The notes beneath the pieces were generated by a model. That model was given only the letters and a program-made list of their open reading frames with translations, did not search any database and had not been told where the DNA came from. Of a stretch of 64,000 bases of DNA, positions 17,556 through 45,096 are shown in pieces. Positions within the stretch are counted from its first letter, which is position 1, and every line of letters starts with the position of its first letter. The stretch is from assembly GCA_965240325.2 (NCBI GenBank), contig OZ251226.1, positions 1,240,001-1,304,000 on the forward strand, given 5' to 3'. This stretch comes from Rebecca billardiae RCC1528. Taxonomy: Eukaryota; Protista; Haptophyta. The position numbers and the translations under genes were made by a program.

Positions 17556-17699
17556 CATATAGCTAGCAGTATTGTCGTCGTGTGCCACAACCGCGTAGTA
17601 GTCACAGTACTGAACTGTAAATAGTAGTAGATGAATGCTGGCGCACGGCTGCGCACGCGCACGCGGCGGCATGATAATGGCGCGCTGTGGATTTTGTAC

Positions 17700-18188
17700 G
17701 GGAAAACCCCGGAAGTCCGACGAGGACCGACCGAGCAACCAGAACTCCGACAAACCTCCGCATCTCAGCACGGCGATTTCCGGACTGGCACCCCCGCCAG
17801 TTTTCCGACGGCCAGAAGCTTCGGGAGCGAGCAAATGGCGCCGCTCGCCCGCAACGCGGAAGATACCGCTCGCGGCGAACCGGCGCGAACGCCCGCCTTG
17901 TATTCGGGCGGAGTACCCTAATGAGCGGGGGTGGGTACTTTCGTATTGCGCGCAGCCTGACGCCCACCCGCGACGAAACGACGCCGTCGACTCCTCCCGC
18001 CCGGACCGCCGCCGGAACGTTGCTCGTCAATTAGTTAGAGAAATGCGACGCCGGGGGGCGCGCCGCAAAACTTGCTCCCGAGCTCGCCACGAGGGACGAT
18101 CGATGCCTCGCACGACGTTAAGGGGGTACGCCTGCCACGCGCGCGGGCGTCGTGCGCGCGCCGCGTGGTCGCGCGCGGCGCATCGCGC
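17700..18188 (+). repeat. left terminal inverted repeat (~489 bp)
   Basis: Reverse complement of 34969-35463, apart from a few substitutions, a 6-bp indel and a ~14-bp divergent patch near 18097-18110. Confidence 0.95.
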
Positions 18189-21100
18189 GCGCGTGTGTCT
18201 TCGTTCGCGCGCGCGGCGTGCGCTCGCGCATGTCGTCACGCCGTGCGTTCTGCGTCGTTGCGCGGCGTCGTGCCCGCGTGCCGCGCGCAGGCCGCCGCCG
18301 CCTGCGGGGACGACTCCGACTGCGACGAGCTTCGCGAACGGGGCTGCTGTGGACGTGGTGTACGAGCAGGGTGCACCGGCAGTCCGTGCTGTGGTCGCGG
18401 CGCTTGGGGTCGGCGCACACGGGCGAGTGCAGACGTACGTCCTCCGGGCTGCCGAGGGAGTGTCTGCTCATGCGTGGGCTGCGGTCCCTGGCGACACCGT
18501 CGGTGCGTCCGCGGATGGAACAGTCGAGGGCGCAGGCTCGTTGAAGAGGGTGCCAGCGGCGCACGTGCGTGCGCCGCCCGCCGGCGAGCAGTGCGCCGAG
18601 CAGGGGCAGGGCGCCGAGCAGGGCGCCGAGCAGGGCGCCCTGCTCGGCGCCCTGCTCGGCGCCGAGCCGGGCGCCGAGCAGGGCAAGCAGGCCGCCGAGC
18701 AGGGCGCCGAGCCGGGCGCCGAGCCGGGCGCCGAGCAGGGCGCCGAGCAGGGCGCCCAGCCGGGCGCCGGGCAGGGCGCCGGGCAGGGCAAGCAGGCCGC
18801 CGAGCAGGGCGCCGAGCCGGGCGCCGAGCAGGGCGCCGAGCAGGGCAAGCAGGGCGCCCAGCCGGGCGCCGGGCCGGGCGCCGAGCCGGGCGCCGAGCAG
18901 GGCAAGCAGGCCGCCGAGCAGGGCGCCGAGCCGGGCGCCGAGCAGGGCGCCGAGCAGGGCGCCCAGCCGGGCGCCGGGCAGGGCGCCGGGCCGGGCGCCG
19001 GGCCGGGCGCCGAGCAGGGCAAGCAGGGCGCCGAGCAGGGCGCCGAGCAGGGCGCCGAGCAGGGCGCCCAGCCGGGCGCCGGGCATGGCAAGCAGGCCGC
19101 CGAGCAGGGCACCGAGCCGGGCGCCGAGCAGGGCGCCGAGCAGGGCGCCCAGCCGGGCGCCGAGCAGGGCGCCGAGCAGGGCGCCGACGGCCGGCCGGCC
19201 CGCCACGGCAGCACGCGCGTGGGCGGCGGCAGCTACGCCGCCCAGGGCATCCAGCAGGAGGCTGCGGGGCAGCGCGGCGCGCAGGGGGCGGCTCACCACA
19301 ACGGGCGCGGCGGCGTGCGGACGCGGGCCATGCGCCGCCAGCCGCCACGTGCGCCACCCGCCGAAGCGCTGCCCGGCGTCACCTCGGCGCCGCCGGCGCC
19401 GCCGTCGGCGCCGACGGCGGTCGCAGGCGTCACGGCGGCGCCGGCGGCGCCGCCTGCGGCCGCCGGCGGCCCCGCGACAAGCGACGAACGCGCCGAGCCG
19501 CCACGCGCACCCGTCGCAACGCTGGCGCCGGCGCCGGCGCCGCCGCCGGCGCCGACGGCGGTCGCCGGCGTCACGGCGGCGCCGGCGGCGCCGCCTTCGG
19601 CCGCCGGCGGCCCCGCGACAAGCGACGAACGCGCCGAGCCGCCACGCGCACCCGTCGAAACGCTGGCGGGTGCCACCGGCGTCACCGCGGCGGCGCCGGC
19701 GCCGCCGCCTGCGGCCGCCGGCGGCCCCGCGACGCGCGCCGAACGCGCCGAGCCGCCACGCGCACCCGCCGAGGCGCCGGCGGCTGCCACCGGCGTCACC
19801 GCGGCGGCGCCGGCGCCGCCGGCGCCGGCTGCGGCCGCCGACGGCCCCGCGGGCGTCAACTCAGATGACTCCGGTGGTGCTGCCTCGGGCGAGGTGGCAC
19901 GGGCGGCGACGGCGTCGACCGCGACGCGCGCCGAACGCGCCGAGCCGCCACGCGCACCCGCCGAGGCGCCGGCGGCTGCCACCGGCGTCACCGCGGCGGC
20001 GCCGGCGCCGCCGGCGCCGGCTGCGGCCGCCGACGGCCCAGCGGGCGTCAACTCAGATGACTCCGGTGGTGCTGCCTCGGGCGAGGTGGCACGGGCGGCG
20101 ACGGCGTCGATGGGTGGAGCGGCGGCTGGCGCAGCGGGGTCGCACTCCCATGCACCACAGCAGGCGCCCGCCGCCGCGCAACCCGGCGGTGGCGGCCACG
20201 CGGACGACGGCGGCGGCGTCTACGGCAGCGGCGACGGCGGCTCACGCGAGCTGTTCGCGATGAGCGATGTCTTGCAGCACGTGGATCATTTCTTCAGCGG
20301 CATCTTCGGGAAACGCCGGAGGTTCGGCGGAGACACGCCCGCCGCGCCGGCGCAGGCGCACGCGCACGTGCTGGTGCGCCCCAGCGCGGTGGCGGATGCG
20401 GACGCGCGGACGACGAAGCACGGGCCGCAACCGAACAACGGCCGATTGGTGCCGGCCATCCTCAGGTTCAACCGCGCGTTCGCGTCACGGCATCTCGGCG
20501 GCGGCGGCGGCACGGTCCGCGTGGTGAACGTGGTGTGCGATGCCACGAACAACAAGCACTTCGGCGTGCTCACGGATGCCGACGCTGTGCGCGAGCTGTG
20601 CGCCTCGGGCGCCTTGTACACGCGCAGCGAGGTGGACGATGCGGTGCGCGAGTTCTACGCCGGCGCCGCCGCGAGCGTCGGCGGCTCTGTCTCTGAGCTC
20701 GCCCTGCGCGCAGCAGGCGAGCACTTCGGTGTGCACGGCCCGTTGCCCTACGTCCTCGACGCGGACGTGCGAGTCGCCTTAGCGGACGCTGAGGCCGACG
20801 ACGATGGCGTCGCAGGCGGCGACGCGCCCTGGGTTCACCGGGCGCTTGCGTTGCCCTCGATGCGGCGCTCGGGACAGGCGGTGTTCGGCCTCCCCGCCGT
20901 GGTTGCACAGGCGCCCTCCTGGTGCGCGCTTGTGCCCACGCCGCTGCGGGCGCCCGCTGAGCAGGGGACGTCGCCTTTGCTGCACGCCGCCGTGGCCGTG
21001 GTGGACTACCGGTCCGTGGACACCGACGACACCGACGAGTCGGAGCCCGTCGTCGGCGCGCACGCGTACGCCATCCGCTTCGAGAAGGGCTGGCGCCTCC

Positions 21101-23808
21101 TCACCTTCGCCACGCGGCCGCCCAGTGGTGCGGCGGGCGCGATGACGGCTGCGACGTGCACGAACCTCACGGTCGGAGCCTTCGCCGCCGCCGTCAGCCG
21201 GCGTGAGGTTGCTGCGTGCGAGCTGCAGTCGCTGCAGTCAGCGCCGCGGGCCATTGCGCCCCCCGTCCAGCACGCCGCCCCCGCGCTCCACGACCCGCCG
21301 CCCAGCCCGGACGAGACGGACGCGTTGCCGCCCCGCCCGCGCCGGGACGTGGTCCCGACGTCCACGGACGTGCTCATGGGCGCCTCCGCGGTGTGCAGCG
21401 CGCTCGGCATCGGGCCATGCCATTGGGCGCCCGATGGCGACCCGCCCGGGCTCATGACGAACGCCGCGGCCATCGCGGAGGCGGCGCTCACGTACGTGCA
21501 GTCGAACTACGACGTGATTGGGGGCACGGCGGCGTCGGCGGACCTGCTGCACACGCTCCACCAGATCATGGTCGCCGGCCGCCCGCAGCGCTCGTTTGAC
21601 AGGCCTCTCCCCCGGCCGGGCGGTGGGACGCGCGTGCGCGTCGCAGGCGTCGTCGGCGAGCTGCCCGTCCATGAACAAGAGCTGATGCTCGCCTCGAAGC
21701 ACACGTGCGTCGCGGCGGCCATCGCGTGCGCCTCGGCGCTCGTGCTGCGCGTCAAGGCGGCACACCTGCGATACGACGCCCTCGCCGACGTCAGCGTGGG
21801 CGATGGTGCGTCCTTCGAGGCGGCGGACTACCTCACCAAGGTGCGCATCGTCAGCGCACGGCTCGTCGCGCCCGAGCGGAAGAAGCGGCTCACCTTCGAG
21901 CTCCTCGCCGTCTCCGAGGATAACGCCGGTGCTTACGACCGCGTGCTTAACGCCGACACGAGCTCGCGGGCACTCCACCGGGACGAGGTGCTCGAGTTCA
22001 CCTACGTGCCTTCGAAGACGCGCTCGTGGAAGTCGACGGAGGCGCTGTCAACGCACAGCCGCGCGGCGGCCGGCGACGACGCCGACGCCGGCAACTTCGG
22101 CACGCTGTTCTTCGTCCCGCACATGCGCGACCCCGTGAAGGCAGCCGCCCTGGCGCGCCCGCCGCCTGCCGGGACGCCACCTGCCGCGCCGCCCGTGGGT
22201 GCGATTGTGGACTTTCGCCCCTTGTGCATCAGCGTGTGGGCTGACATCGTCCCGTTCTGCCAGGATCGGCTCTGGACGCACCCGGCGGACCCAGTCACCG
22301 GCAAAAGCAGCGGCGTGGACGCGCCGAAGATGTACGCCGCCGCGCTCCACAGGCGCGCGCCCTCGCTGGCGCGGCACGTACAGGCGGCGCCAGCGCGCAA
22401 GCGTCGCCTGAACGAACGCGGCGCCGACGCGGGCGGCGCGGGCGGCGGCGCCGGTGGGCGTGTGGTGGCGCGCCGGCCGGTCGGCGACCCGGGCCGCGTC
22501 GCCGTCACACGGCCATCCGCCGTCGCGCGCGCACCCGGGCCACCCGAACAGGCGACGCGCATGTGCACCGAGCTCGCTGCGGCCCACGCCCAGCTCGCTG
22601 AGATGGTGCACGGCATCCCCAACGCAATGGCACACGCGATCGGACAACTCGCTGCGAACGACGCCAAGCGCCAGAAGGACTACGAGGCCTGGCGCGCGGC
22701 GGACGAGGATCGGCGCCGGCAGGAGCGCGCGGCGGACGAGGCCTGGCGCCAGCAGGAGCGCGCGGAGGCGGCGCGCCGACGCGACGAGGATCGCGCGGCC
22801 GCAATGAAACGTGACGAGATCGCGAGCGCGATGGTGGCGTCTATGCAGGCGTTGACGCAGTTCATGATGGACCGCAGCGCAGGTGGCGCACAGCCCGGCC
22901 CGCACGCGTCGGCGCACGCGGCGTGCGTCCAGCTGCCAACAGGCGAAGCACCGCACGGCGCGCACGCCCCGGCTGCGGGCCCGTCGGTGAGCGCTGCGTC
23001 CGCTGCGCCCACGTCGCGCGCACCCACGGCACGGCGTGGCGCGCCGCCGCCGGTCGCATTCGGCCAGCGCGCGCGGCGCCGAGTGCCGCCCCCTGACTCG
23101 CGTGTGCCCGCCAGGCCGCTGCACTGTCGCTCCGTGCGCCGGCCGCGCAGGCCGACGAAGCCCCCGCGGGCCAGCCCCCGCCGGCCGCGCAGTAGACGCC
23201 GACCCACAAGGGCGCGTCCTGACGTGCCCACGCGCCGCCCACAGGTGCGCGCACACACCACATCGGGCGGCGCCAGCCGTGCGCACGCCGAGCGGCGTGT
23301 ACGCGCAGCCCTGGCTCAGTCGCGCCCGACCGCCCCCGTGCGCGCGCGCGCGTCGCGGTGGCGTGCACAGGCTGCGCGCCACCCGGGGCGGCCACGCGGG
23401 TGGCCGCCACCGCTGGCAGCATCTGGCCACGAGCTCGGCACCCGGGGTGCCGGCGGAGTGGCTCGTCGGAATCGCCGTGGCCTGAGCCCGATTCTCCGAG
23501 CACACGGCCACAGGCACCCCCCCGGCCAGCGCCTCTGCGCCACTCGCAGTGACGGCGCCACAAGGGCCTACGGCGGGGCCCGCCGAGAAGGTCTTAGCGA
23601 AGGTCTTAGCGGGATGCAAGCAGCGCCACGCGCGACAACACTGATACACGCCGCCGGGGGCCCACACTGTGCCGGCCCGTGCTATGTCGTCGTCAGCTCG
23701 GACGCAGGCCGGCCGGCCGGTGCCGAGTCGGCGCCTGTCGTTCTGTTAGCTGGCACCTGGCGTGCTCAGGCGGCGTGGTGCGCACTCAACGTACTCCTGC
23801 AAGGGTGA
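18103..23808 (+). CDS. transposon accessory gene (mudrB-position): possible Tudor/Agenet-like N-terminus, GAEQ and Pro/Ala repeats, unknown globular regions, coiled coil
   Basis: >6-kb open frame. Proposed ATG 18103 with in-frame intron 18126-18290 (GTACGC...CAG). NLS-like GKRRRF and RKRR; coiled coil ~22660-22860. The 3' end after ~23030 is uncertain (may be spliced). Confidence 0.65.
18594..19186 (+). repeat. coding minisatellite, 12-bp unit GGCGCCGAGCAG ([12 protein letters not shown] variants), ~50 units
   Basis: Read directly from sequence. Confidence 0.9.
19410..20109 (+). repeat. coding internal duplications (2 x ~120 bp and 2 x ~190 bp with 192-bp period)
   Basis: [15 protein letters not shown]...[12 protein letters not shown] occurs twice; [10 protein letters not shown]...[10 protein letters not shown] occurs at 19729 and 19921. 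Confidence 0.85.
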
Positions 23809-26800
23809 TGTAGCTCGCATGAAGTGCGCCAGACGCCCCTCGTTGTTGTCGCGCGCCGAACGCGCCTCCAGGGGCGCCGTCGCCGACACCACCGCGCCGA
23901 AGTGGCAACGGCCGTCGTACACCACGGCCATCCACGTCGTGCCCAACTGCGTGACGTCCAGACGCTGCAAGGCGCGCCGCGTGCGCTCGTCACGCAGGCG
24001 CAGGTGCGCATGCGTGCTCACTGCGACGCTGCCCTTGCGCCCGCCGTCGTCAGTCCGCCGCCAGCGAAGGCCCGGCCGCGTCTGCACGGGGTAGAACCAG
24101 ACGTTGTCGGTGAACGCGCGCCACGCCGCCTCCTCCGGCGTAGCCCCGCCGCGCAGCTCAAGGACCACCAGCGGCAGGCCCGTGGCGCGCGCCGTCGCGA
24201 CGTGCGAGCCCCACGCCGACCACGCACCAGCGCGCGCCGCATGCGCGCCAGCGCCGTCGCCCGTGTACCGGGCGCCGCGCGCGTACGCGCGCGCCGCTGC
24301 TCCCAGCGTCCGCACGCCTCCAGTATGTCGCAGTGGCAGTGGCAGCACCTCCTGCCAGTCCTCGTCCTGCACTTCGAGTCCTTGGCCGGTGCGGGCCCGG
24401 GGGATGGATGCTGGCTTGACGCCAAGCATGCCGAGCGCGCTTGCCGCCGACGCAGTGGCCGACGCCGTGCCGAGCGTCTCGCCCGGTCCGTGCTCGTCCT
24501 CCCACGACGCGATGTACGAGCACACGCCGTCGCGCAGCGTCTGCGCGCGCGCGTTGGCGGCGGGCAGGTCGGCCCGCACGCCACGCGTGTCGTGCGCGAG
24601 CCACGCGTGAAAGTAGCAGTCGCCATCGCCGGGAACGTCCTGCACGCTCGTGCCGCCGCCGAAGAGCTCGCGGATGGCCGCGGCGACGTTGCCGTCGCCA
24701 TCCACGCCGCCGGGTGCTCCGGTCTGTGCACCAGCCCGCGCCTCGGGCGGCAACGCCGGCGGCAGGGGCAGCACGGGGAAGCCCAGGCGCTCGAGCAGGA
24801 CCGCGGCGTCGTCCACCGGCGCGTGCACGTGTGCGGCGGCCGCCGGAGCCACCGCAGCCGGCGCAGCCCCGTGCCCGGCGGGCGCCGGCGCCGCCGCACC
24901 CGCGTCCACGGTGGCGTCCGTCGCCGCCGCGGCGCGCGGCGCGGCTGCGCCGCGTGGCGCGGCATCACCCGCCCGCTCCGCCGTCACGTCAGCGGCGGTC
25001 TCGCCCAAGGCCAGGCGCAGCCCCAAGCCCACGTCGCACCGCCATGCCCCGTCGGAGCCGTCGAGAGGGACCACCTCGGTGCCGAACGCGCTCGGGTCCA
25101 GCGCATCCACCTCGCACCCGCGCCGCCTGGACGCCAGCCTCACGTGCGCGTCCGCAGCCGGCTGGAACGCACTCCAGCGCGACGCCGGCAACACCCCGTG
25201 CGCGCGCGGGGTGGCCTGCGGCGCAACCACTGCGTAGAACTGCCGGCGAGGACACACGTTGCGCACGATGGCCACCCAGCCGGTGCCCATCGCCCCGACG
25301 TCGAGCGTGCGCAGGACGCGTGCGTGCGTCTCGCGTCCCAGGCTCAGGCGCGCTTCGCACAGCGGACGTGCGTCCGCGTGCGCGGCGCCTGCGTCGGGCG
25401 TGTCGGCGCGCCGGCGCTTCGCGCCGGCGCCCCCGCGAACGCGTGCCGCCGCCGGCGCCGGCGGCACGCGCACTGCCGCCGGAGGATACCACCGCACGTG
25501 CTCACGCATGGCGACGCCGTGCACGTCGCGACTTCGGCGTGCGCCGGCCATGTCGAAGACGAGGAGGTGCACGCCGGCGGCGCGAGCGACTGCCGCGTAC
25601 CACTCAGGGCCATCGCACGTGTTGCCCCGGCTGCTGACGTACCCGTCGCACGTGTACTCCGCCGCTCGCACTGCCAGCGTCACTGCGTCGTCCAGATCGC
25701 GCACGCGCTGGCCGGGGGTGTGCCACCACGACGACGAGTCGTCGGGGGCCACCATGCGCAGAGCCCGCAAACGCGCCTGCCCAGCTTCGTCGCCACCTGC
25801 GCTCTCCGGGGGAAGTGCGCGCACGTCAGCGTCGCACAAGCCGATGAAGCGCGCCTGCGCTCGCAGGTCCTCTGCCGACTCGGCCGGGCCCAGCGCGCCA
25901 CCCCAGCCGACGGAGTGCTCGGTGGGCGTGGCATGCGCGTGCGCGGCCAGCCACGACGCGGCCGCCGCGCGCAGGCGCCGCGCGCAGCACGTCCACCACA
26001 GGGCCTCAAGCGTGCTGGGCGGACGCGCCCGCGCGTGCGCGTGCGCGAGCACCGCGTGCAGCACGTCGTCACCGTCGGCTGGCACGGGCAACGGCTGTGC
26101 GGCGCCCGCGCCCCAGAGGTCGTCGAGCACTGCCTGGGCGCAGCAGAGCCGTAATCGGGCGAATTCGGCGTCGTGGTCGTCTGCGCCGGCGGCGGCGTCG
26201 GCGGCGTGGAACAGGCGCACCGGCGCGTGGCGGTCATCGCCCGCGGCGCGCGCTCCAGCGTCGCGCACCGGCAGACCAGTGCGCGCCAAGTGGGCGACCG
26301 CGTCGTCCGCGGTGGCGACGGCTGTGTCGTCCGCGGCACCAGACGTGCCACGCGCCGTCCCCAGCAGGTCGGCGCCTGCGCGCGTTGGGCCCGGCGTCGG
26401 CACCGCCCGCGCCGCCGACGATGGCCCCGCCGTGGACGCGCGGGCGCCCGCCGCCTGGCGCGAAGCCGGCGGCAGGCGCCCATCCGCGGCCGCACCGCCC
26501 GCGTCGTCGGCGGCGGCCGCAGTCCGAGGGCGCTTGGGCGCGCACGGCGCAGACGCGGCCCCCGCGCCCGCGCGGGAGGTGCCAGCCGCGGCGCCCGCCT
26601 GGACTGCGGCGCCTGCGCCCGCGCCGCCGCCGCCAGCCAGGACGTCCGCCAGGCCCGCCGCCGCCGCCGCGACGTCGTGTGCGCCTGCGTGCGCCCACAC
26701 GTGGGAGGCCGCGTTCGGAGCGGCGCCGCCCGAGCCCCTCGCGCCGCCACTGCCCTCGGCGGGCACGGCGGGCGACGCGTGCGCGCGCGCCAGCTCGGCG

Positions 26801-29800
26801 GGGGCGGCGGCGGCGCGCGCAAACTGTGCCAGCACCTTGCCCGTCGTCGCGCTGGACGCGCCGAATGCGTCACCGGCCGTCTCGCTGAGCGTGCGCCACG
26901 GTGCTGACAGGCCGCGACTGCACATGAACATGGCTGCCCTGCCCCGACCGATGCCAGGTATGCGCTGCAACGCCGCGAGCACTGCGGCGCTGTCGTCAGC
27001 GAGGCGCGCGTACGCCGACTCGGACTCCGCCGCCTCCGCCGGTGGCTCTGCCGCGCCCGCGCGCGCCCGAGGGACTCGCGCACCCGGTGGCGGTGGCGCG
27101 TGGGCGCCGGGCCACGGGGGGCGGAAGGGATGCTCTGTCGCCGCCAGCGGTACTGTGTCGCCCGTGGCCGGCAGCGGCTCCGCGGCGTGCGCGCGCGCGC
27201 GCGCGGCGGGCGTCGTGCCGGCGTCCGCGCCACTGCGCGGGCCCGTCGTGCCCTCAGGCGGTGCGGCCGGCCGCTGCGTGGCGGCGTTTGGCATCGGTGC
27301 CGTCGCGAAGCCCATGCGTACGCCGGTGCCGCCAAGTGCCTGCGAGGCGATCGCGCGCGCGCAGTGCCGGCGCGGGCCGCCGCGCGCGCCCGCGCCCGCC
27401 GCGGCGGCGCCGTCGCGCGTCTGGGCGGCCGCCGGCTGCGTGCGCCCGGGCGCGGGCGCCGCCGCGCCGCGGCCCCCGCGGCCGCCTGCGCGGCCCCCGC
27501 GCGCGCCTGCGGTGCGCGCGGGGTCGCCGCGCGCGGCCCCACCGCCGTGCTGTCCGCGCATACGGTGGTATGGCACGTCCTCCGGCCTCGCGCCGCGCGG
27601 CCCGTCGGGCGCCGCCGCCTCGCCCGCCGCGGCTGCGCGCGCTTCGCGCAGGCGCTTCCACGCCCCCGCGACGAGCAGGAAGTAGCAGCACGTGCACATG
27701 TACAGCCCGCTGTCCAGCGCGCCGAGGTGCCACACATACTTGCACTGCGCGGGCGAGTGGATGAAGCAGGCGCAGCCCTGGCACGCCAGTCGGGGGTCGA
27801 TCGGCGGCGAGTCCGCCGGCCACGCCGCGCTGAGGTCCGCGGCCTCGGGGTCGAAACACGCGCAGCAGCGCAGTTGCGCGGCGGCGGTCGTGCCGGCCGT
27901 GTACGTGGCAAAGTGGCGACGTCGCTGGTTCGCAACCACACCCTCGCGGAGCGGGCCGGCCACGCGCACGAGCACGTTAGTGTCGTCGAGCACGTGCGTG
28001 TGCGCGATGCCGTACAGGTGCTCCGGCAGCCCCTCGAGCACACGCGCGAGCTCGTCGCGGTGCGCTTCGCGCACGCGCCGGGCGAAGTCGCCGTCCGGGG
28101 CTTGCTCCCTCAAGGGGCGCACGTACGACGCCGCGGATTTGCCCAACTGCACGCGCGGCGCGCGCGCGCGCGGTGCGCGCGGGTGGCGCGCCCCGGCGCG
28201 GCCCTCCCAGAACGCCAGCCGTCGCGCCGAGGACGCGGGCCTGCCCACGCGCGCGGGCACCGCTGGCATGGCCACGTACTTTTCGAGCAGGGCGCGCTTG
28301 GCGAGAGCGGGCAGCAGCAGAGCCGCAATGGCGTCCTCCAGGCGCTGGGGCGGTGTGATGACGTCGAGCTTGGTGATGGCCACGACGCGCCCGAGCGTGT
28401 CCACCCGCGTGTCGTTGGCGTCGCGCTCGACCCGAAGGCCCACCTGCGCGAACCACGTCTCGCAGCGCAGGTCCTGGGGCAAGCACGTGCCCATGGCACG
28501 GCCGACGGAGGTCGCCACGCGGCAGAAGTGCATGCACGGCAGGCGCTTGCGGCGCAGCAACGCGCAGCACCGGAACTCGTCGAGGTACACGTGGCGCGGC
28601 GCCGAGCCGTCCGTGGTGTTGAGCATGCGCAGGGCACCTGCGTGCGGCCCGTCGAGGACACGGTGCACTTCCACCTGAGAGAGCGTGCGCGCCGTGCTCA
28701 CCTGCTGGCGCACGTATTCCAGGTGCCGTGGCGGCAACCCGTGCACCTCATCATCGGCGTCGGGCTTCAGGGCGTGGCGCACGGCGACGCTGCGGTGCGT
28801 CGCGTAGAGGCGAAAGAGGTTGTCGTGCAGGTCGAGCAGCATCCACACCGGGCCCTGCGCCTTGCGCACCGGCAGCAGCCAGTGCATGAAGGACTCCGCC
28901 GGCGCGGACGTCACGTAGCCGCGCAGGGACACCGGCGCGAAGCACGGGAAGAGCTCCTCGCGGGGGATGACGTCGAGGATGCGCTTGGCCGACTCTGGCA
29001 TCTCCACCCAGGCGGCCTCCCACACCTCCTCGGTCAACGCGTCCACGCACGCGTCGAACACGCGCAGGATGGTGGGCACCTCGTTCGCCGAGTGTGCGTA
29101 GCCCGTGATGAAGGTCTGGCGCTTGTGGAACGTGCACAGGAAGAGGTGCCTGCGCGGGCACAGCAGCTTCCACGCGCCGCGCAGGCCCTTCTGGCCGTCC
29201 GAGATGGTGACGCCGTTGGGGTCGTCCCACACAGCCGCCCCGCCGAGGTGCTGCATGAGGTATCCGACGTGCGCGCACCACGAGTCCAGGCACTCCACGT
29301 CGACGATGTACGACACGCACAAGACGAACAGCTGCCGGTTGGCGTTCACGGCCAGCGTGACGAAGAGCATGCCTGCGTCGCGCGCGTGCGTGCGCGCGGG
29401 CAGGTCAGACGGGCGGGCGCTGAGGCGGCACGGACGCACGCGGCGTCGCGAGGGCGTGCCCGGGTGCGGCGGGCGCGCGCACCCGCGCGCTTCGCGCCAC
29501 CGCTGGCGGGGCGGTGCAGGAAGCACGCGTCGCTGAACGCGGCCGTGTTGCCCTTCGCGTGAAAGTGCTCGCGGTAAAGCGCCTTGGCCTGCTTGGGCAC
29601 GTAGTGGAAGCCACCCACTGCCTTCTTGCCGCGCACGTCAGCCAGCGCCTTCTGCACCTCCGCCGCGTCGGGGTTGAAGGCCGCGCGCTGCGCGCCCGCC
29701 GGCAGCCCCTGCTGCACCTCGTCGTGCACGCGGCCGAACATGGCCAGCAGCGCGTCCTCGACCGAGTTCTCGTGGAAGATGATGGGCGCGACCTCGTTGC

Positions 29801-32800
29801 CCTCCTGCGACAGCGACGCGCACACGGCCACGAGGTCGCGCGACATGGCCGTGTCGTCCCCGTAGATCTCGGCGCGCGCTTCTTTGTGCGCTCGCGCGAT
29901 GAGCGATTCACCCATGGGGAGCTCTGCGTCCAGCTGGCGCGCGACCTCTCGTGCTTGCTGCGGGCCGTAGCACAGCTGCGCGTGCGTGGTCCCGCGCCGG
30001 GCCAAGCGCGCCTTCCAGTCCTCGACGATCGCCCGCCCGAGCTCGTGTTGGGAGTACGGCGTCGTGCGCACGCCCGGCTGGTTGGTCGGGCGCGGCAGCG
30101 AGCCGATGGGGTGTTCCTCGGACCCCTTGCCCATGCGCAGGTTGCGGCACATGGAGCCGTGCGCGACCGAGCGTTGCACGGCCCACGGCGGCGCGCCAAA
30201 CGTGTCCACGTACTTCGACGGGCCCACCACCACCACGGACGGGCACCCGGGCGTGGGGCATCCGATCGTCAGCTTGGCGCGGTCGACGCGCCGCGTCGGC
30301 GGCATGGCCCCCCGGTGCAGCGCGCACTCCGAGGCGTGCGTGAGCGCGTCGGCGAGGCGCGGGTACACCTGGCGCACCATCGGGGGCTCGAGCAGGGTGG
30401 CGTCCGCCTTCACCTGGGAGTACGGGCGCGGCGCCCGCAAGCCCATTTTCCTCCACAGTGCCAGGGGCCGGAGCTCGAGGCGGTGCGCTGCCGCCGACGT
30501 GCTCGCCGAGGTGCTCGACGGCGCGGAGTAGCGGAAGTACCCGGCGTCACCGCCGTGGTGCAGCGACTCCGGCGCAACAAGCCGGGCGCCGGCCTGGCCG
30601 GCGCGGGGCTCGGCGGGACCGGTGGAGGGCGGCTGCGCGCGAGCGACGATGGGTGGACACGGCATGAGGGCAGCCAGCGGGTCGCGCGCGCGAGCGGCGT
30701 CGCTGTCGGCGGACTCGTCCGCCTGCAGTGCCGCCTGCGCCGCGCGCGCGCGGGCGTCCGCGCAGTCGTCGTCCGCGATGCCCTCCTCCCAGTCGCGCAC
30801 GTCGATGGCGGCACTGGCGGGATCGGCGTCCGTGACGAGCGGCTCGCCGCGGGCGTCGGACTCGCCGACGCGCATCGTCGGCCAGTCCGCGCTCAGGGCG
30901 AACAGCGGCGCGTTGCCGCGGGCGGCCGCCGTCGTGTGCGTCCTATGGCCCACGGACGCGTCGACGAGGGGCACTCCACCGCGCGCCCATGCGGGCGCCG
31001 ACTTCTCCGTCGCCAACGCGTCGGCAAGGTGGCCACCGAGGTGGGCACGCTGGCCGGCGTGCAGGGCCAGGGCGAGGTCCCCGCCGGACAAGAGGCCACC
31101 TGCGTGCGGCAGCGCAGGGAGGGCCCTCAGCCGCGCGTCGTCGTCGTCATTGCCGCCGTCGCCACCGGAGGCGCCGCGCGGCTGCGGCGGCGCGCGCGAG
31201 GCGCAGCCGGGCGGCTGCGCGATCACCGCGCGCGCGCTGCTGCTGTCGAGGGGCGGCCCCGCCGGGTGGAGTGGCGGGCGCGCCGTCGCGGCGCACACAG
31301 CAGCGCCGGGCACCGTCACCGCGACGCAGGGCACGGCGTCGCCCGCAGCGCAGGGTGCGCCCGGCGCTGGCGTTGCCACGCGAGCGGGCGAAGAGTGCCC
31401 ATCGCCAGGCCGCGGCGACGCGGGCTCGTGCGCGCCCGGCGCGTCCGAGCTCGAGCTTTGGCGGGCGCCGGTGTGCCGCAGCGGGGCGGACGCTGCGTCG
31501 GGGCGACGCACGGCCGTGGGCGCGCGCGGCCTGACAGCCGGGTCGTCAACGCCATCGGCGCGTGGGGGCCGCGCGCCCTCGTCAAAGGGGGCGCCCACGT
31601 GCGCGCCCGTGCCGTGCGCGGCCGCGGCGGTGGGCGCGCGCCCACCGCCGTCGGCGTGAGGCGCGGGGTGGCCGCCCGCAAGCCCCACGACGTGGGGCAC
31701 GGCAGGCGCCGCTGCGCGCTCATGTGCGAGCTGCGCGCCGTCGGCAGCGCACACGGGCAGCGCCAGCTGCAGCGCCGACTGCGCCCAGGCCCGCTGCTCG
31801 TGGTCCGACGGCGCCTGCTGGCCGTGCGCCGCGGTCGGCAGGTCGACCACCAGGCGGGAGACGTACTCGTGGTGCGCAGGCGAGCCGAGCCGGAAGCGGG
31901 CGTCAGCGCCAGCGCGCGTGGGCTCAGCCCCCCAGCGCAGCCTGGTCTCAAACGAGTGCTGGAGCCCGCGCTCGAGGGCGGGCACGAGCCGATACGGCGT
32001 GGGAGGCGGGTCGGAGCGCGCCGCGCACGGCGTGGCGGCGGGGCGAGGCGCGCTCGGCGGCGGCGTGAACGAAGCGCGGAATGTGTCCGCGAGGCCCCGC
32101 CCCCCGAATGAGAACACAGCCTTCAGGACGAGCGCGTCCGCCGCACCCTGACGCGTAGGCCTCTTGCGCGAGGACGACGGCACGGACCCAGAGGACGCGG
32201 CGCGCGCACTGGGGGCCGAGCGGTGATGCCACATGGCGGGGAAGATGTGCACTGCACCTGCGCTTTCCTGCAGGGCAACGTCGCCGTGCAGCGGCACGGC
32301 GTCGGCGCGCGCACCGGGGGGGCGCGCGCCGACCGTCTGCAGCGGGAAGGGATTGGTGGGCACACTTTGCGGCAAGTGCAAGAGGACCACTGCCGTCCAC
32401 AGATGGTCCTCGTCGGTCGTGCCGTCGACGTGCCACCCGTACGTCGTGACGTCGCCGTCGTCGCACGTGCCGCGGCCCCCGTCGGGCGGACGCATCGGCC
32501 GCCCGAAGACATGCCAGGCCGTGAGGTCGAGCGCGTCGAGGCCGCGGACACCGTCAGAGGCGTCGCCGCGGAACAACGAGCTCACGACGCCCTTCAGCGC
32601 CGCCACCACGCGCTCAAAGGCGCGGCACCCCAGCACCGAGCGCGCAGAGGAGCCGTGGTCGCCCACCCCCCAGCGCCGCTGCGCGGCCGCCTCGCCGCCC
32701 GCGTCCGCGGACTGGTACGCGTGCACCGTGCGCAGGAGGCCGCCACCCTCATCCAGCAAGGGCATGGACGCATCGCCGTCCCCGCCGAGGCCTGCGTGCT

Positions 32801-34637
32801 GCAGCACGTACTCGCGCAACGGGCCAACCAGCACGCCCATGTCCATGTCCAAACGCTGCGGTGCCGCAGCGGCGGCACCAAACGCGGCCTGCAGCGCGCG
32901 CCCAACCGCGGCGTTATGCGCGAGCATGTCGTCGAGGCTGGGCGCGGGCGCCGCCGCAGGCGTCGGCGCCAGCGCGTCGCCCAGCGGCGGCTCGCCTGCA
33001 GGCGGCAGCGCGCGCGGCACCACCACGGCGGAGGCAGGGCGCATCGCGCCCGACGCCGCGCTCGTCACCTCGTCGCGCCACGGCGCAGCGGCGCCCACGA
33101 CAGCGTGCGCACCGCACAGCGTCAGCACCAGCGTCACTGGCGGCTGCGAGACGGCCGCGCCGGCCACGAGGGCCTGCGCGAAGGTGGCGTCGAGCAAGGG
33201 GTGCAGACGCGCGCCCTCGCCGACGTGCACCAGCGCGGGCGCGAGCGGGATGACCACTGCCCACACGGTGCGCTCGGCGATGGTGGAGGCGGCCCGCAGC
33301 AACGGCCGCGCCAGCCACCCTTCGCGCAGCGAGCCGTCCTCGCACGCGGCCACAAAGGCCGCAAGACCGGCGTGGCCGTCGGCGACCACGGCAGCACGCA
33401 GCCTGACGGCGGCTGCGCGCACGGCGGCGTCACGTCCAGCGGCGGCGCCGGACGTGGCAGCGCGCGGCGCTCCATCTGCCGCCACCCCTTCGCCGGCCCC
33501 CACGACGGCCTGCGAGACGGCGCCGAGCCACGCCAAGCGGGCGCTCTCGAGTTCCGCACGCAGCTGCTGGTCGCGCCAGCGTGCCTGCTCAGCCGACGCG
33601 GGAACGAACGCGCGCGGCTGCGCCGGCACGGGCGCGCAGAGCGCGCGTACGGCAGCGTACGCCTGCGTGCGCAGCTCCGCCGCTCGCGCACGCAGCGCGT
33701 CCGCGCAGAGGCTGCTGCGGCCTGCTGGCCACGACGCCACGCGCTCGAAGGCGACGAACAGAGGCTCGGACTGGCCAGCGTCCGCGCCGAAGACGGCGCG
33801 CGCGTAGTACATCACCGCCTCGGACGGGCATGACAGCGGCGGGCACGGGGGGGGCGCGCCCGTCCAAGCGCCCGACGGCGCCGCCGCCGCCGCCGTCGTC
33901 GCCGGGAGCACGTCGTCGACGCCTCCGCCAGTCCCAGCACCTGGGCGGGCATCCGGACGGGGGGCGCACAACGCCGCCAGAGCCAGCTTCGTCCGGAACG
34001 GAGCGGCGGCCCAGGCCGCACGCACTGCCCACGCGCATGCGCCCTGCGCGTGCTCAGCGGCGCGTGCGTGCTGCCCTGGGGTCGGCGCCGAGGACGACGG
34101 CGACAGCGACTCCGCGCCACCCGAGCGGCGCGCGTGGGACGTGCCTGCGGGCGGCGGCGCCGGTTTCCCTCCGAGCGCCGCTGCGGACGCCGTCAGTCGC
34201 GCCGTCTCCGCGAAACTGCCCTCCTCCGCCAGAGCCCCGTCGGCGGAAGCACCACAGGCAGCGCGCACGGCGATCTGCGCGACGGCCCTGAACCAAAGGG
34301 CCGCCGCGCACACGCGCGCCACCGAGTCCGCGCGCTCACGCAGCGCGTCCGGGTGCGAAGCCAACAACTCCGCACACTCCACCACAGTGAGCAGCGCGTC
34401 GGCGCCGCTGCCACCCCATACGCGCGGCACTGTGACCTGCGCGGCGGCGGCGCCAAGGCCCACGTCGGTGCTGTGGACCACGCCGAGGGTGCACAGCACC
34501 AGACCAAAGGTGAACGTCCACGGGGCTGCTGCCGAGGAGAACTGCAGCGTGCACAACGCGTCGTCAGCCGCTGCGATCACCGCGTCCACGAGCAGCAGGT
34601 CGTCCTGACTGCTGGGGCCGGCGGACACATGCCGCAT
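23746..34637 (-). CDS. giant MULE transposase fusion (~3,593 aa): 2OG-Fe(II) oxygenase, Zn-binding DBD, DDE, SWIM, PHD, pseudo-OTU, OTU; join(complement(29483..34637),complement(23746..29372))
   Basis: Intron 29373-29482 joins AFSDACFL...AG|MLFVTLAVNANRQLF...VECLDSW. Also ISDGQKG, CTFH, TSAPAESF; SWIM-like FRCC...LPCMH; PHD-like CCAC...CQGCACFIH..QC...CTCC; VPGDGDCYFHA...CHFGAV; GWHVD...WHHRS; CPTPGCP...HGSMC. Confidence 0.85.
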
Positions 34638-34968
34638 GCCCGCCTGCGCGGTACGTGCCAGCACGTGCGGCGGAGAGGCAAACGCAGGCGCGCGCGAGCA
34701 CACACACGGGGCACATCGTCAGACAGGGGACGGGGGCGCATGGGAGTGGTGCGGTGTGCGCGCGCGCGGCGGCGCACGCCACCAACATCGCTGCCGACCA
34801 CACACACCCGCCCCGGCCCACCGCGACCTCGCACCATTCACGAATCACGAGTGCGACTTGCCTGCTCGTCGCGGCCGGCGACCGTCGACGCCTCAGACCG
34901 ACTCGGATGCGAGAAGGGGGAACTCCTGCGAGGGGAGGCCGCAGGGAACAAGAACGGTCGGTGCGTGT

Positions 34969-35463
34969 GCGCGATGCGCCGCGCGCGACCGCGCGGCGCG
35001 CGCACGACGCCCGCGCGCGTGGAAGGCGTACCCCCTTAACGTCGTGCTCACGCCCAGCCCTCCCTCGTGGCGAGCTCGGGAGCAAGTTTTGCGGCGCGCC
35101 CCCCGGCGTCGCATTTCTCTAACTAATTGACGAGCAACGTTCCGGCGGCGGTCCGGGCGGGAGGAGTCGACGGCGTCGTTTCGTCGCGGGTGGGCGTCAG
35201 GCTGCGCGCAATACGAAAGTACCCACCCCCGCTCATTAGGGTACTCCGCCCGGACCGCAATACAAGGCGGGCGTTCGCGCCGGTTCGCCGCGAGCGGTAT
35301 CTTCCGCGTTGCGGGCGAGCGGCGCCATTTGCTCGCTCCCGAAGCTTCTGGCCGTCGGAAAACTGGCGGGGGTGCCAGTCCGGAAATCGCCGTGCTGAGA
35401 TGCGGAGGTTTGTCGGAGTTCTGGTTGCTCGGTCGGTCCTCGTCGGACTTCCGGAGGATTCCC
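34969..35463 (-). repeat. right terminal inverted repeat (~495 bp)
   Basis: Inverted copy of 17700-18188. Confidence 0.95.
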
Positions 35464-35641
35464 ATTTTGTACTGACGATGGAATTAGGATCGAGGCAACG
35501 CCAAATAAAACAATAATAAGGGTCATCATCAAAAATGAAAAGGCCAAGAGCCGTCCGACCTGCCCGGCTCCGCCGCCGCCGCCCGGGCCGGAGCAGAGGG
35601 CCGTGCGCCCGCCCGTGCCGTGCCGGTGGGTGGACGACGCA

Positions 35642-38218
35642 ATGGACAGCGCCGCCCCGAAATCCTTCCTCTGCCCGATCGGCATGGAGATCATGCGCGA
35701 TCCCGTCGTTTGCGCCGACGGCTATAGCTACGAGCGCGTCCAGATCGAGCGGCGGCTCGCCACGCAGAACACAAGTCCGTACACTGGGGCTGAACTTTCC
35801 AGTACGATGCTCACTCCGAACCATGCGCTGCGCAACTCGATTGAGGAGTGGCTCACGGCGAACTTCAAGCTCGTGCCGCGCTCTGCGGTTGCCTTCGAAG
35901 AGGCTGCTTTGTCGCGCGTCTTCTTCAAGTCAGTCCACCGCGGCACCCTGCGGGGGCGCGCTGAGCCGATCGCGGTGCTGCGCATGCGCGCTGGCGGCTT
36001 CTGTGAGGAGGCGGCGGCAAAGCTCGTGCGACTCCGATACCATCCGAGCCTTGTGCGCTACCTCGGCCTGTGCACCGAAGGCCCCGAGCATCTGCTCCTC
36101 ACCGAGCTTGCGCCGCTCGGCTCTCTCAGCGCCTTCCTCGAGGCGCACGAGGCAGAGGTGACACTCGCGCACAAGCTGACGATGCTCGAGCAGATCTGCG
36201 CGGGCATGATCGCGCTCAGCTGCGCGGGGATAGTGCACTGCGACCTGGCGGCCCGCAACGTGCTCGTCTTTGCCTTCGATGCCGCCCACCCAGGGGCCAC
36301 CGTGGTGAAGATCGGCGACTTTGGCCTCGCTGTGGACCGCATGTACCAGACGCACGCGAAAGTGGCGGGGGAAGAGGTGCCTTTCCGGTGGATGCCACCC
36401 GAGGCGCTCCGCCGCCGCCGCTTCTCCGAGAAGTCGGATGTGTGGGCGTTTGGCGTGACGGCGTGGGAGCTGCTCACAGGCGGCGACGTGCCCTACGCGT
36501 TCATCGGCTCCAACGAGGCCGTCGCAGAGCGCGTCTGCAGTGGCGAGCGGCTCGCCCGCCCTGACAAGGTCCCGGACTCGCTGTGGGCGCTGCTCAAACG
36601 CTCGTGGGCGGCGATGCCGGCCGACCGGCCCATGTTTACGCAAGTTGCAGTCGCGCTGGCGGACATGCAGTGGCTGGCGACGCTTCCGCCCTGCAGCTCC
36701 AGCCACGAGTACTACATCCGCGTGAAGGATCTGTTAGGAAAAAGCTGGCCCGTGCAGGTCGCGTCCGAATGGCTCGTCGAAGACCTGAAGGCTGCGTTGC
36801 AAGAGAAGATGGGCGTCCCAGCTGACGAACAGAGACTGATCTTCGCGGGCAGGCAACTCCAAGACTTTCGCACGCTCGGCGAGTACGAGATCGCGAACGG
36901 CGCGGAGCTCCACCTATACCTGAGGCTGCGAGGCGGCTGCATCGCCTCGCCGCTTCCCGCGCTCTTTGGCGCACACACCGGTTCGCCCGGCCTCGAGTTC
37001 CTGACTGGCGCGCCCGGCTCGGCGGACGAAGCGCGCGCGCTGATCGCAGCCCTCGGCGGCTCCCTCGACGAGACTCCGCGCGTCCACCCCGCGGAGCTGC
37101 TGGACGCCGACGCGTGCGCGGCGCTCGTGCGGACTCTCGACGAGCACGCGGCCTCGGCCGCCCCGTCCGAGGCGGCAGACGTGCGTCTCTCGCTCACCGA
37201 CGCGGCGCTGGAGCGCCTCATTGGCGGCGCGGCGCTGGCGCGGCTCCGCGAGGTGTTTGGCGGGCCGTGGGACGCCGTCAAGCTCCGGCGCGCTGCCGCG
37301 GAGGGCCAGTGCGTCGCCTTTCACTGCGACTACTCCAAGCGCACGATGCAGGTGGCACTCAACGCAGAGGACGATTTCGGCGGTGGGAAGCTCACCTTTG
37401 CGACGGCCGACGGCTTTGTGCAGCCCGCGCGGCCGCGGGGCTCGGCCACGGCGCACGCCAACTCGCTGGTGCACGGTGTGAGCACGCTGACGCGCGGCGT
37501 GCGCTACGGTCTCTTCCTCTGCGACACCAAGGGGCCCGGCGTGGAGCTGGGCTACCTCAACGTCGCGGCGCGCGCGCAGCTGGGCTTCTTCGAGAGAGCG
37601 CTGGCGCTGCTCGACGCCGCCACCGACGCCGACCTGCTTCGGGCGGTGCGCGAGTATGCCGCTGTGCTCGCCGAGGGCGGCGCAGGTGGCGCGCCCACCA
37701 GCCTGGCTGTGGAGCTCGCATGGCGCACCCACCTGCTCAGCCCACTCCGGTACGCGGACGCGTGCGCAGTGCACCACGGTCGGCCTGTGGAGCACCAGCC
37801 GGCGCACGCGTACGCTGAGGACGCGCCGGTCGCTGCCGCCGGCTCTCCTGCCGCCGTGGCATTCAACGGATCGCTCGAGTGGCTCGGGCTCGACCTGGTC
37901 GCGGCGATGCGGCGGCAGCAGCGCTTCATGCGCGACGCTCTCGCGTGCCGCACAGCCTACGACTCGGAGGAGGCGATGGCCGCCGCCGTGGACGAGTACC
38001 GCGCCTTCCTCGACCACTTCCACCACTCTGCGCGCGAGCTCGTGCCCACGACGGTCGTCGACCTCGTGTGGCACACGCACATGCTCGACCCCCTCCGGTA
38101 CAGCCGCGAGACGCGCGCGCTCGCCGGCCGCTTCGTCAACCACGAGGATGATGTCGCGCCAGAGCGCCTGGCCAATACGGCGCGGCTCTGTTGGCCCCTC
38201 GAGCGCGCTGGGTCTTGA
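35642..38218 (+). CDS. multidomain protein: U-box, Tyr-kinase-like domain, ubiquitin-like (LRLRGG), 2OG-Fe(II) oxygenase, GRDP/DUF1399-like repeats
   Basis: [38 protein letters not shown]; [32 protein letters not shown]; [18 protein letters not shown]....[10 protein letters not shown]; FHCD...GGKL...HGVS...RY; [11 protein letters not shown] and [18 protein letters not shown]...HED. Confidence 0.85.
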
Positions 38219-41777: not shown

Positions 41778-42747
41778 GCGGGGTGCGGCCAAGCTCGGCC
41801 TGACGGCGGTGTGGTTGCCAGCGGTCGGGCGTCGTGTGAGTTTCACCGCAGGCCGCCCACCCTGCGCATTGACGACCATGCAAACGTCGCCGTACGCGCC
41901 CGATCCCGCACGAGTTGCCTTGCACAGTAAGCCGTATGGCCCATCGTGGACGCCCTTCGCAAGCTGTCGCCACTTCGCCGCGGTCTCCTAGTTTTCCGCT
42001 CCCGCAAGCCTTCAACTTTGCTTGAGACCCCTTCGACCGCTGAGAAACCCGCACAAATCCAGCGAACAGTGGCCGAGATGCTAACAAGATTGCAGCTAGG
42101 CCGAATCGGCATCATCGTGCCTTTCGGGATGACGATTGGCTCTTTCAACTTTGATTCCAAAGATTCATAAAGATGCTATTGAGATAATATGTCTCACTTT
42201 GTCCCGGGAGAAGTTGAGATGATCCATCGACCGACCAATGGGAAGGCAGAACCGCGGGCATCGCGAAAAAAAGCGTGAATTGTTCGCGGGTTGCGGCCCA
42301 GGCCCGACAAAAAACGCAGCGATTTGCCTGGCGGGGTGGGCAGTGCCGTTTGGGCGGGGGGCTGTCTTGCTGAGCTTGACTAGAAGGAGGCGGCCTGCGC
42401 CTGGGGGCTGCCAGTGGCCTGGCAGAGCCAGCAGGCGGCTGTGTGGCCTGCTGTCCAGTGTCTGGCTGTGTAAGGCTGCTTTGAGCTCCGTTACCAGTGT
42501 GACTGCCAGCAGCGGGGTCTGCCGCCATCTCAGGCCCCCCATGTCATACCATGTTTTCTATCGTCTACTAAGTGACTATGAATACGAACGCGGACGACGA
42601 TGTCGAGGCGGTACGACGACGCTGCCAGTAGTTGCTCAGTCAGCAAGCTGAGCAGTCACCACTGTCTTTGATGATGCACGAATAGTGAATACCGGTTACC
42701 GCACAAGGAGTGAGTCAACGAGAAACTGGTAGGAGTCACTCGGTGAC

Positions 42748-44670: not shown

Positions 44671-45096
44671 CGCCTGCCGCGGTAGCGCGAAGTGGGTTCT
44701 CGGCCGCCGCGTAAGCCTCCGTCGTTGGGTCGTGTCGCCGGTGCGCTTAGCTAGCGCCGACCGCGCGGGCCCGGGCGGGCGGCAGCGGCGGGTGCAGAAG
44801 TACTCCGGAGTCCGGAGCATCCGCCGGACGGGTGCCTGCGCCGGCCTGCCGGCACTGCACTGACTAATACTAGTTACTTGACCCCCATACTGAATACCAA
44901 GGGCGGTACCCATACCATGTTTTCTATCGTCTACTAAGTGACTATGAATACGAACGCGGACGACGATGTCGAGGCGGTACGACGCTGCCAGTAGTTGCTC
45001 AGTCAGCAAGCTGAGCAGTCACCACTGTCTTTGATGATGCACGAATACCGCACAAGGAGTGAGTCAACGAGAAACTGGTAGGAGTCACTCGGTGAC

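Follow-up and report, generated by a model that had tools for sequence, protein, structure and literature searches.

A giant Mutator-type transposon of the haptophyte Rebecca billardiae with a tandem OTU pair and a probable PF13640-type oxygenase in its transposase frame

What is encoded by the three longest stop-free frames in a 64,000-nucleotide stretch of the genome of the haptophyte Rebecca billardiae RCC1528 (GenBank assembly GCA_965240325.2, contig OZ251226.1, positions 1,240,001 to 1,304,000 of the forward strand)? All three lie inside one transposon of 17,764 bp, which occupies positions 17700-35463 of this stretch (the window, whose numbering is used throughout) and has terminal inverted repeats and a target duplication at both ends. 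An earlier note, made from the sequence alone, had proposed a transposase fused to a 2-oxoglutarate (2OG)-Fe(II) oxygenase, a PHD finger and OTU deubiquitinase domains, together forming a chromatin-editing transposon. The best explanation of the locus as a whole, and one that we consider fairly probable, is an autonomous Mutator-like element (MULE) whose multidomain transposase carries a pair of OTU modules and a probable PF13640-type oxygenase. It draws on features that can be observed directly: the element ends and target duplication, a continuous frame, the motifs of a MULE core, two OTU modules in tandem, and a similarity to PF13640 that has statistical support.

The element is an intact Mutator-type DNA transposon. 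This superfamily is recognised by target duplications of 8-11 bp (typically 9) and by long terminal inverted repeats. Here the same 9-mer, ATTTTGTAC, stands on both flanks as a perfect match (17691-17699 on the left, 35464-35472 on the right). The inverted repeats are ~494 bp long on the left (17700-18193, plus strand) and ~494-500 bp long on the right (34964-35463, minus strand), with paired blocks (I1, I2 and I8) that are 95-100% complementary, and both termini start GGGAA...CCGGAAGTCCGACGAGGACCG. The element is young, a recent insertion, and sits in a window with a GC content of 62-81%. Its three long open reading frames (ORFs) share no similarity with one another except in a stretch encoded by the inverted repeats. 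We propose that it belongs to a family of giant, autonomous MULEs that would move by DDE-type cut-and-paste transposition, with a 9-bp target duplication and inverted ends of ~500 bp.

Two of the three frames, the second and third longest of the window, would together form the transposase gene. These are ORF1 (29346-34703, 1785 aa) and ORF2 (23746-29526, 1926 aa), both on the minus strand and overlapping at 29346-29526, and they are joined by removal of one short candidate GT-AG intron. The acceptor AG lies at 29374-29373 and the donor, as read from the sequence, at either 29500 or 29482. The first donor gives an intron of 128 nt (29373-29500, minus strand), and the second gives the 110-nt intron chosen in the earlier note. 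A frame-restoring intron must have a length of 2 mod 3, and both lengths comply, so that the single frame claimed there is restored with either. With each splice the MULE domain also regains its first strand (FSDACFLH / MLFVTLAVNAN). The spliced coding sequence would comprise exon 1 (29501-34637, minus strand, from the ATG at 34637, or ending at 29483 with the shorter intron) and exon 2 (23746-29372, minus strand, including the stop codon at 23746-23748), and would have 3,587 or 3,593 codons. Besides the ORFs and the translation, the exons are supported by codon composition: GC content at third codon positions (GC3) exceeds that at second positions (GC2) throughout ORF1 and ORF2, with a weaker contrast in linkers rich in Ala, Gly and Pro.

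Could the region instead hold two or three co-linear genes, one containing the oxygenase, one the transposase and one the OTU modules, with spacers that stayed open by chance in sequence of 76% GC? Off-frame ORFs of 800-900 codons do occur in the window, so openness over the linkers is by itself weak evidence for one gene. Moreover, the only public sequencing run holding this DNA, which consists of low-depth fragments, contained no spliced joints or RNA and gives no RNA evidence of one transcript or of the intron. However, all parts lie in one frame for 1785 + 1926 codons, about twice the length of any off-frame ORF, and the excess of GC3 over GC2 persists through the linkers. Separate genes are decidedly unlikely on these grounds. 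Frame continuity and codon-position GC favour one predicted coding sequence, a single continuous frame of ~3,590 codons that is beyond chance. The contigs of the same public run diverge into unlike sequence at 27185-27245 and 28147 and have six single-base differences across 28408-31888; they may therefore come from other family copies or from another strain.

The predicted multidomain protein of ~3,590 residues would begin with ~600 residues of unknown sequence, followed by the probable PF13640-type oxygenase, a long low-complexity linker and a Cys/His finger. The C-terminal part would continue with the MULE DDE core and a SWIM-like motif, a Cys/His cluster with one helix-hairpin-helix, a further linker, a dead OTU module and, finally, an OTU module with intact motifs.

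The DDE catalytic core spans the intron (28894-29531, minus strand) and was recognised from signatures read by eye and a weak Pfam match. Its acidic residues are D1725 of ORF1 (29531-29529) in FSDACF, D110 of ORF2 (29199-29197) in TISDGQKGL...CTFHKRQ, and E211 of ORF2 (28896-28894) in APAESF. The match to the Pfam MULE family (PF10551) has E 0.0025 and 18.7 bits, where the cut-off is 27.6; it covers profile positions 14-95 of 99 at 29376-29125, and the first 13 positions lie across the intron. A candidate Cys/His DNA-binding finger (30147-30263, minus strand; C1482, C1487 ... H1515, C1519, in the pattern Cx4C...Hx3C) is placed where the WRKY-GCM1/FAR1-type finger of MULE transposases sits (PMC1702500), and a SWIM-like motif, CC-x9-C-x-H, is found at 28522-28569 (minus strand). 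Neither of these motifs has a Pfam match. The single helix-hairpin-helix motif, LQRIPGIGRGRAAMF (26920-26979, minus strand), was matched by the Pfam HHH profile at E 0.066, below the cut-off. Although the curated MULE score was not reached, we regard the element as a secure member of the Mutator superfamily, given its MULE motifs in combination with a target duplication of 9 bp and long inverted repeats. The earlier reading of a Mutator-type transposase in the long frame is thus supported, and all of the motifs listed with it (HxD...H, Cys/His finger, SWIM, Cys/His cluster and OTU loop) were found at the positions given for them.

Two homologous modules lie within the C-terminal 800 residues of the protein, with 31% identity from end to end (BLASTP E 7e-7). 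Module 2 (23857-24705, minus strand) has the catalytic motifs of an OTU protease, with D1634 and C1637 (24618-24616) in the Cys loop VPGDGDCYFHA (24633-24604) and H1875 (23904-23902) in the His loop VVYDGRCHF. Its Cys loop has the D-G-x-C pattern and aligns to that of Pfam OTU, of OTUs of the Protein Data Bank (PDB) and of an OTU profile that we built from five giant-virus proteins, and its His loop aligns to YDG.HY of the profile after inserts are masked with X. Module 1 (25192-26154, minus strand), which is OTU-like by its similarity to module 2, is catalytically dead: Asp1154 takes the place of the catalytic Cys (PADGDDVLHA) and Gln1429 that of the catalytic His (RRQFYAVV). The earlier claim of OTU domains therefore stands for module 2, with its Asp/Cys/His motifs and profile match, but has to be qualified for module 1.

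Library matches of module 2 were weak but concordant, all of them falling at the Cys loop. Pfam OTU (PF02338) gave E 0.31 (12 bits against a cut-off of 23.3, over a 102-residue piece only), and the PDB sequences matched were a nairovirus OTU (E 0.17) and EschOTU (E 0.63). In a language-model search of the Atlas, OTU was found in 38 of the 60 nearest clusters. The giant-virus profile aligned to module 2 in hhalign with P 4.8e-5, and the match reached the WG...IVVL block when the alignment threshold was lowered. When the two long inserts were X-masked, P improved to 1.8e-5 in a collinear match of 116 columns that took in the Cys, WG and His loops, and H1875 fell on the catalytic His of the family. 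The profile was also run over 246 natural 281-residue windows taken as decoys from every long ORF of the window, among which the two module-2 windows scored 36.5 and 35.9 and the next best 21.4. The seeds of the profile had been selected through a DNA motif of the Cys loop, so that a match there is favoured, but the rest of the domain also aligns. Module 2 very probably has the OTU fold and would be an active, deubiquitinase-like cysteine isopeptidase.

What would such an enzyme cut? In 2006, Babu et al. suggested for MULE-OTU fusions that the OTU protease processes a polyprotein (PMC1702500). In this element, module 2 would then release the oxygenase, the transposase and the protease as separate proteins from a ~3,590-residue precursor, in the manner of viral OTU and papain-like proteases, and would not deubiquitinate host proteins. 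The nearest PDB matches of module 2 are viral OTUs of nairovirus L proteins, and long low-complexity linkers separate the domains here. However, no cleavage sites were identified in the precursor, its lone LRGG sits within the OTU module itself, and most characterised OTUs, those of nairoviruses included, are deubiquitinases or deISGylases. We consider polyprotein processing rather unlikely and prefer a deubiquitinase-like role for module 2. The LRGG (in LVVLELRGG; 24145-24156, minus strand; ORF2 residues 1791-1794) is the only one in the protein. LRGG is the C-terminal motif of ubiquitin, and its presence in module 2 may mark a self-cleavage site or be a coincidence.

Is the cluster that follows the transposase core a PHD finger, as the earlier note claimed? 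The Cys/His-rich cluster (27679-27870, minus strand; residues 553-616 of exon 2) has the pattern Cx2C-x24-Cx2C-x4-H-x4-C-x15-Cx2C. It is real: of its 64 residues, 10 are Cys and 2 are His, compared to 2% Cys overall. Its spacing is like that of a cross-brace finger, but it has H-x4-C where a PHD finger has H-x2-C. The cluster has no Pfam match; an Atlas search gave a best score of 0.84 and no PHD family; and a single-sequence AlphaFold2 prediction had a mean confidence (pLDDT) of 42, an unusable model. On account of its spacing and of these three results, the cluster is unconfirmed as a PHD finger, and that part of the earlier claim was not upheld.

Does the N-terminal part of the protein contain an oxygenase? 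The probable Fe(II)/2OG oxygenase core (32208-32447, minus strand; ORF1 residues 753-832) has candidate iron ligands H758 (32432-32430) and D760 (32426-32424) in WHVDG (32435-32421), and H827 (32225-32223) in HIFPAMWHH (32249-32223). An Atlas search with this stretch found PF13640 in 47 of the 60 nearest clusters, with a top score of 0.94. For a PF13640-type profile we combined YbiX of E. coli with oxygenases of cyanophages and pelagiphages and with relatives from IMG/VR, and hhalign placed TTYGWHVDG, WTAVVLLHL and AGAVHIFPAMWHHRSAP on the family's HxD strand, the next strand and the distal-His strand, respectively. H758, D760 and H827 align with the invariant H, D and H columns of the profile. 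With six sequences in the profile the score was 24.2 (P 0.01), and with fourteen it was 29.1 (P 0.0017), a value that no composition-matched shuffle attained in 250 trials (shuffle mean 13.1, s.d. 2.3, maximum 22.4). The six-protein seed alignment diverged too strongly to be used in a locus search based on alignment. Over the 246 decoy windows, the stretch scored 29.3, below the 2OG domain of a neighbouring host gene (54.4 and 36.5) and above all 243 others (18.1 at most). AlkB and PF13640 are known members of one superfamily, and an AlkB profile scores 22.3 against the PF13640 profile, which is less than the element's stretch does. By these comparisons the stretch would be more than a chance resemblance, and it probably adopts the double-stranded beta-helix fold of a P4H/PiuC-type oxygenase. 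That it is an active enzyme may be supposed with less confidence than that it has this fold.

Several results weigh against this assignment and against our reading of the element as a whole. Up to E 10, the oxygenase stretch had no matching curated profile in Pfam, PHROGs or NCBIfam (the PHROGs and NCBIfam searches gave irrelevant weak matches only), a PDB sequence search found no match, and an exhaustive phmmer search with the oxygenase piece found 0 matches among 1.84 billion representative proteins. A small PF13640 hidden Markov model (HMM) run with its filters off gave E 13, the probability that hhalign itself assigns to the match is 15%, and single-sequence AlphaFold2 produced an unusable model of the piece (pLDDT 35). 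PF13640-type enzymes bind the C5 carboxylate of 2OG through an Arg or Lys ~10 residues past the distal His; here this residue is ambiguous, being either R834 (+7) or K861, which lies past a 30-residue Ser/Ala insert. All HMMER-library matches of the transposase frame were below curated cut-offs, and no protein or contig search found a relative outside this genome. Word-indexed homologue searches, run with the full ORF1, with the OTU piece and with the MULE core under an 860-aa length frame, returned 0 matches, their prefilter probably being swamped by low-complexity words. No relatives were found in a metagenome scan with the MULE core or in viral scans with the oxygenase and OTU pieces, and tblastn of the oxygenase piece against phages gave no match. 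To these points we add the unusable model of the Cys/His cluster, the choice of the OTU seeds and the lack of spliced joints described above. Taken domain by domain, HMM searches thus gave weak matches for the MULE and OTU parts and, in the curated libraries, none for the PHD and oxygenase parts.

The oxygenase-like stretch might, then, be no enzyme but a chance resemblance, or a decayed fragment captured from the host and kept as a linker in a young, fast-copying family. The empty curated, PDB and protein searches and the unfiltered HMMER value speak for this, as do the large inserts and the lack of a clear 2OG-binding basic residue, and capture of host fragments is known for MULEs (PMC6431247). 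However, all three metal ligands are in register with invariant columns of the family, the score grows with a richer profile and beats every shuffle and every local decoy except the host's own 2OG domain, it also lies above that of AlkB against PF13640, and the independent language-model search points to the same family. We regard a non-enzymatic stretch as possible but on the unlikely side. The 2OG-Fe(II) oxygenase of the earlier note is therefore probable by its in-register PF13640 match, although it has no curated profile match.

Recent capture from the 2OG domain of the neighbouring host gene was considered and rejected, that domain having no BLAST similarity to the oxygenase piece. This gene (35603-38215, plus strand) adjoins the element, which is inserted in an AT-rich 9-mer ~140 bp ahead of the gene's first ATG. 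It has U-box, kinase, ubiquitin and GRDP domains by Pfam. Its PF13640-type oxygenase domain (~37319-37516) was missed by Pfam and found with the PF13640-type profile (HMMER E 3.7e-6, hhalign P 1.2e-7).

On what would these enzymes act? The earlier note saw a chromatin toolkit, in which a PHD reader, an OTU eraser of histone ubiquitin and an oxidative demethylase of DNA or histones would counter silencing or guide insertion. The element is young, and transposons with epigenetic modifiers or anti-silencing factors do exist, such as VANDAL, Phytophthora MuDR with SET and fungal DNA transposons with TET/JBP (PMC12730594). However, the PHD finger is unconfirmed, and the oxygenase resembles protein hydroxylases. 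The AlkB profile gave only a 17-residue, out-of-order match to the stretch (score 20.6), with no ordered HxD...H. Among the 60 nearest Atlas clusters listed, none was TET/JBP or JmjC, and no profile of those families was run. With regard to the three classes put forward earlier (TET/JBP, AlkB or P4H-like), the stretch thus resembles the P4H/PiuC type (PF13640), and AlkB gave no ordered match. Because the stretch resembles PF13640 protein hydroxylases and has no ordered AlkB match, a role in DNA or histone oxidation is without basis in these data. We consider a chromatin toolkit very unlikely, and a role in countering silencing or guiding insertion is speculation.

Given its family resemblance, the putative oxygenase would be a protein hydroxylase and not a DNA or histone oxidase. 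In the model that we prefer, the OTU and the oxygenase would act on proteins around transposition, which may be the transposase itself, or repair or ubiquitin-pathway factors. In its fullest version, which we think unlikely, this model has a Mutator transposase with two working protein-modifying enzymes in one polypeptide: an Fe/2OG oxygenase of the prolyl-hydroxylase type, and a deubiquitinase that is accompanied by a pseudo-enzyme. If it were true, such a transposase would rewire host ubiquitin or hydroxylation signalling during transposition, for example by stabilising itself, by steering repair or by tying mobility to oxygen, iron or 2OG status, and it would be the first in which a PF13640-type oxygenase is fused to a transposase.

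How does this element compare to those already described? It extends an established type of transposon in an unusual way. As early as 2006, MULE transposases fused to an OTU protease were known from Medicago, and others ending in a PHD finger from Ciona and C. elegans (PMC1702500), and the novelty that the earlier note gave to the fused domains was overstated to that extent. The MULE-OTU proteins that expanded in Medicago truncatula have a WRKY/FAR1-type finger, a DDE core, a SWIM motif and a C-terminal OTU-like papain-fold protease in one polypeptide (PMC1702500), an order to which the candidate finger, the DDE motifs, the SWIM-like motif and the OTU modules here correspond. In contrast, the protein here has its OTU doubled (one dead, one live), is several times longer, has a ~1,400-residue N-terminal extension with the probable oxygenase, is encoded in a GC-rich alga and has no detectable sequence relationship with proteins in the databases. 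OTU or Ulp1 domains also occur on Ginger1 and Helitron proteins, and ubiquitin-pathway enzymes have been proposed to assist transposition (PMC2836005, PMC6431247; the latter proposal in PMC2836005). Ginger1 and the Helitron/Helentron OTU/Ulp1 proteins share with our element the fusion of a ubiquitin/SUMO-type cysteine protease to a transposition enzyme, but belong to other superfamilies (integrase-like DDE and Rep/helicase) and have no oxygenase.

The transposase of Rehavkus has a PHD finger (PMC6446971), and the PHD-bearing MULE and Rehavkus transposases resemble the protein here in having a Cys/His cross-brace-like cluster C-terminal of the core (PMC1702500, PMC6446971), although the cluster here was not recognised as a PHD by profile, language model or fold. 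Transposon-borne TET/JBP and SET enzymes are known, and KDZ and other fungal TET/JBP transposons are, like this element, cut-and-paste elements with an oxygenase of the 2OG/Fe(II) superfamily (PMC12730594). Those enzymes act on 5-methylcytosine and are usually encoded by separate genes, whereas the stretch here is PF13640-like and lies within the transposase frame. We found no report in the literature of a MULE with a 2OG oxygenase, or of a PF13640-type oxygenase in a transposase frame. Both this oxygenase and the pairing of a dead with a live OTU module seem to be new.

Transposons that carry enzymes acting on host regulation illustrate the ways in which mobile DNA evades the control of its host or turns it to use. 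We know of no MULE-OTU fusion that has been tested biochemically, and an intact, young family offers a concrete test case for such fusions. If the oxygenase is real and active, protein hydroxylation would join the short list of transposase-borne activities. If it is not, the transposase would still be among the largest single-gene Mutator transposases on record, and the locus would advise caution over motif-based domain calls in GC-rich sequence.

Like maize MuDR (mudrA, mudrB), the element has long inverted repeats, duplicates 9 bp of its target and contains a convergent pair of genes, but it is 17.8 kb long compared to 4.9 kb for MuDR, and its second gene has no recognisable domains. This gene (17635-23808, plus strand) is a 2,057-codon ORF, the longest stop-free frame in the window, and overlaps the 3' end of the transposase gene by ~60 bp; no Pfam domain was found in it. 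A long array in this ORF (18512-19200 and 19385-20110) has a periodicity of 12 nt and repeats of 114-192 nt. Downstream of the element, in a repeat-rich gene region, two direct repeats of 74 nt that are 100% identical (42545-42618 and 44911-44984) lie 2.4 kb apart.

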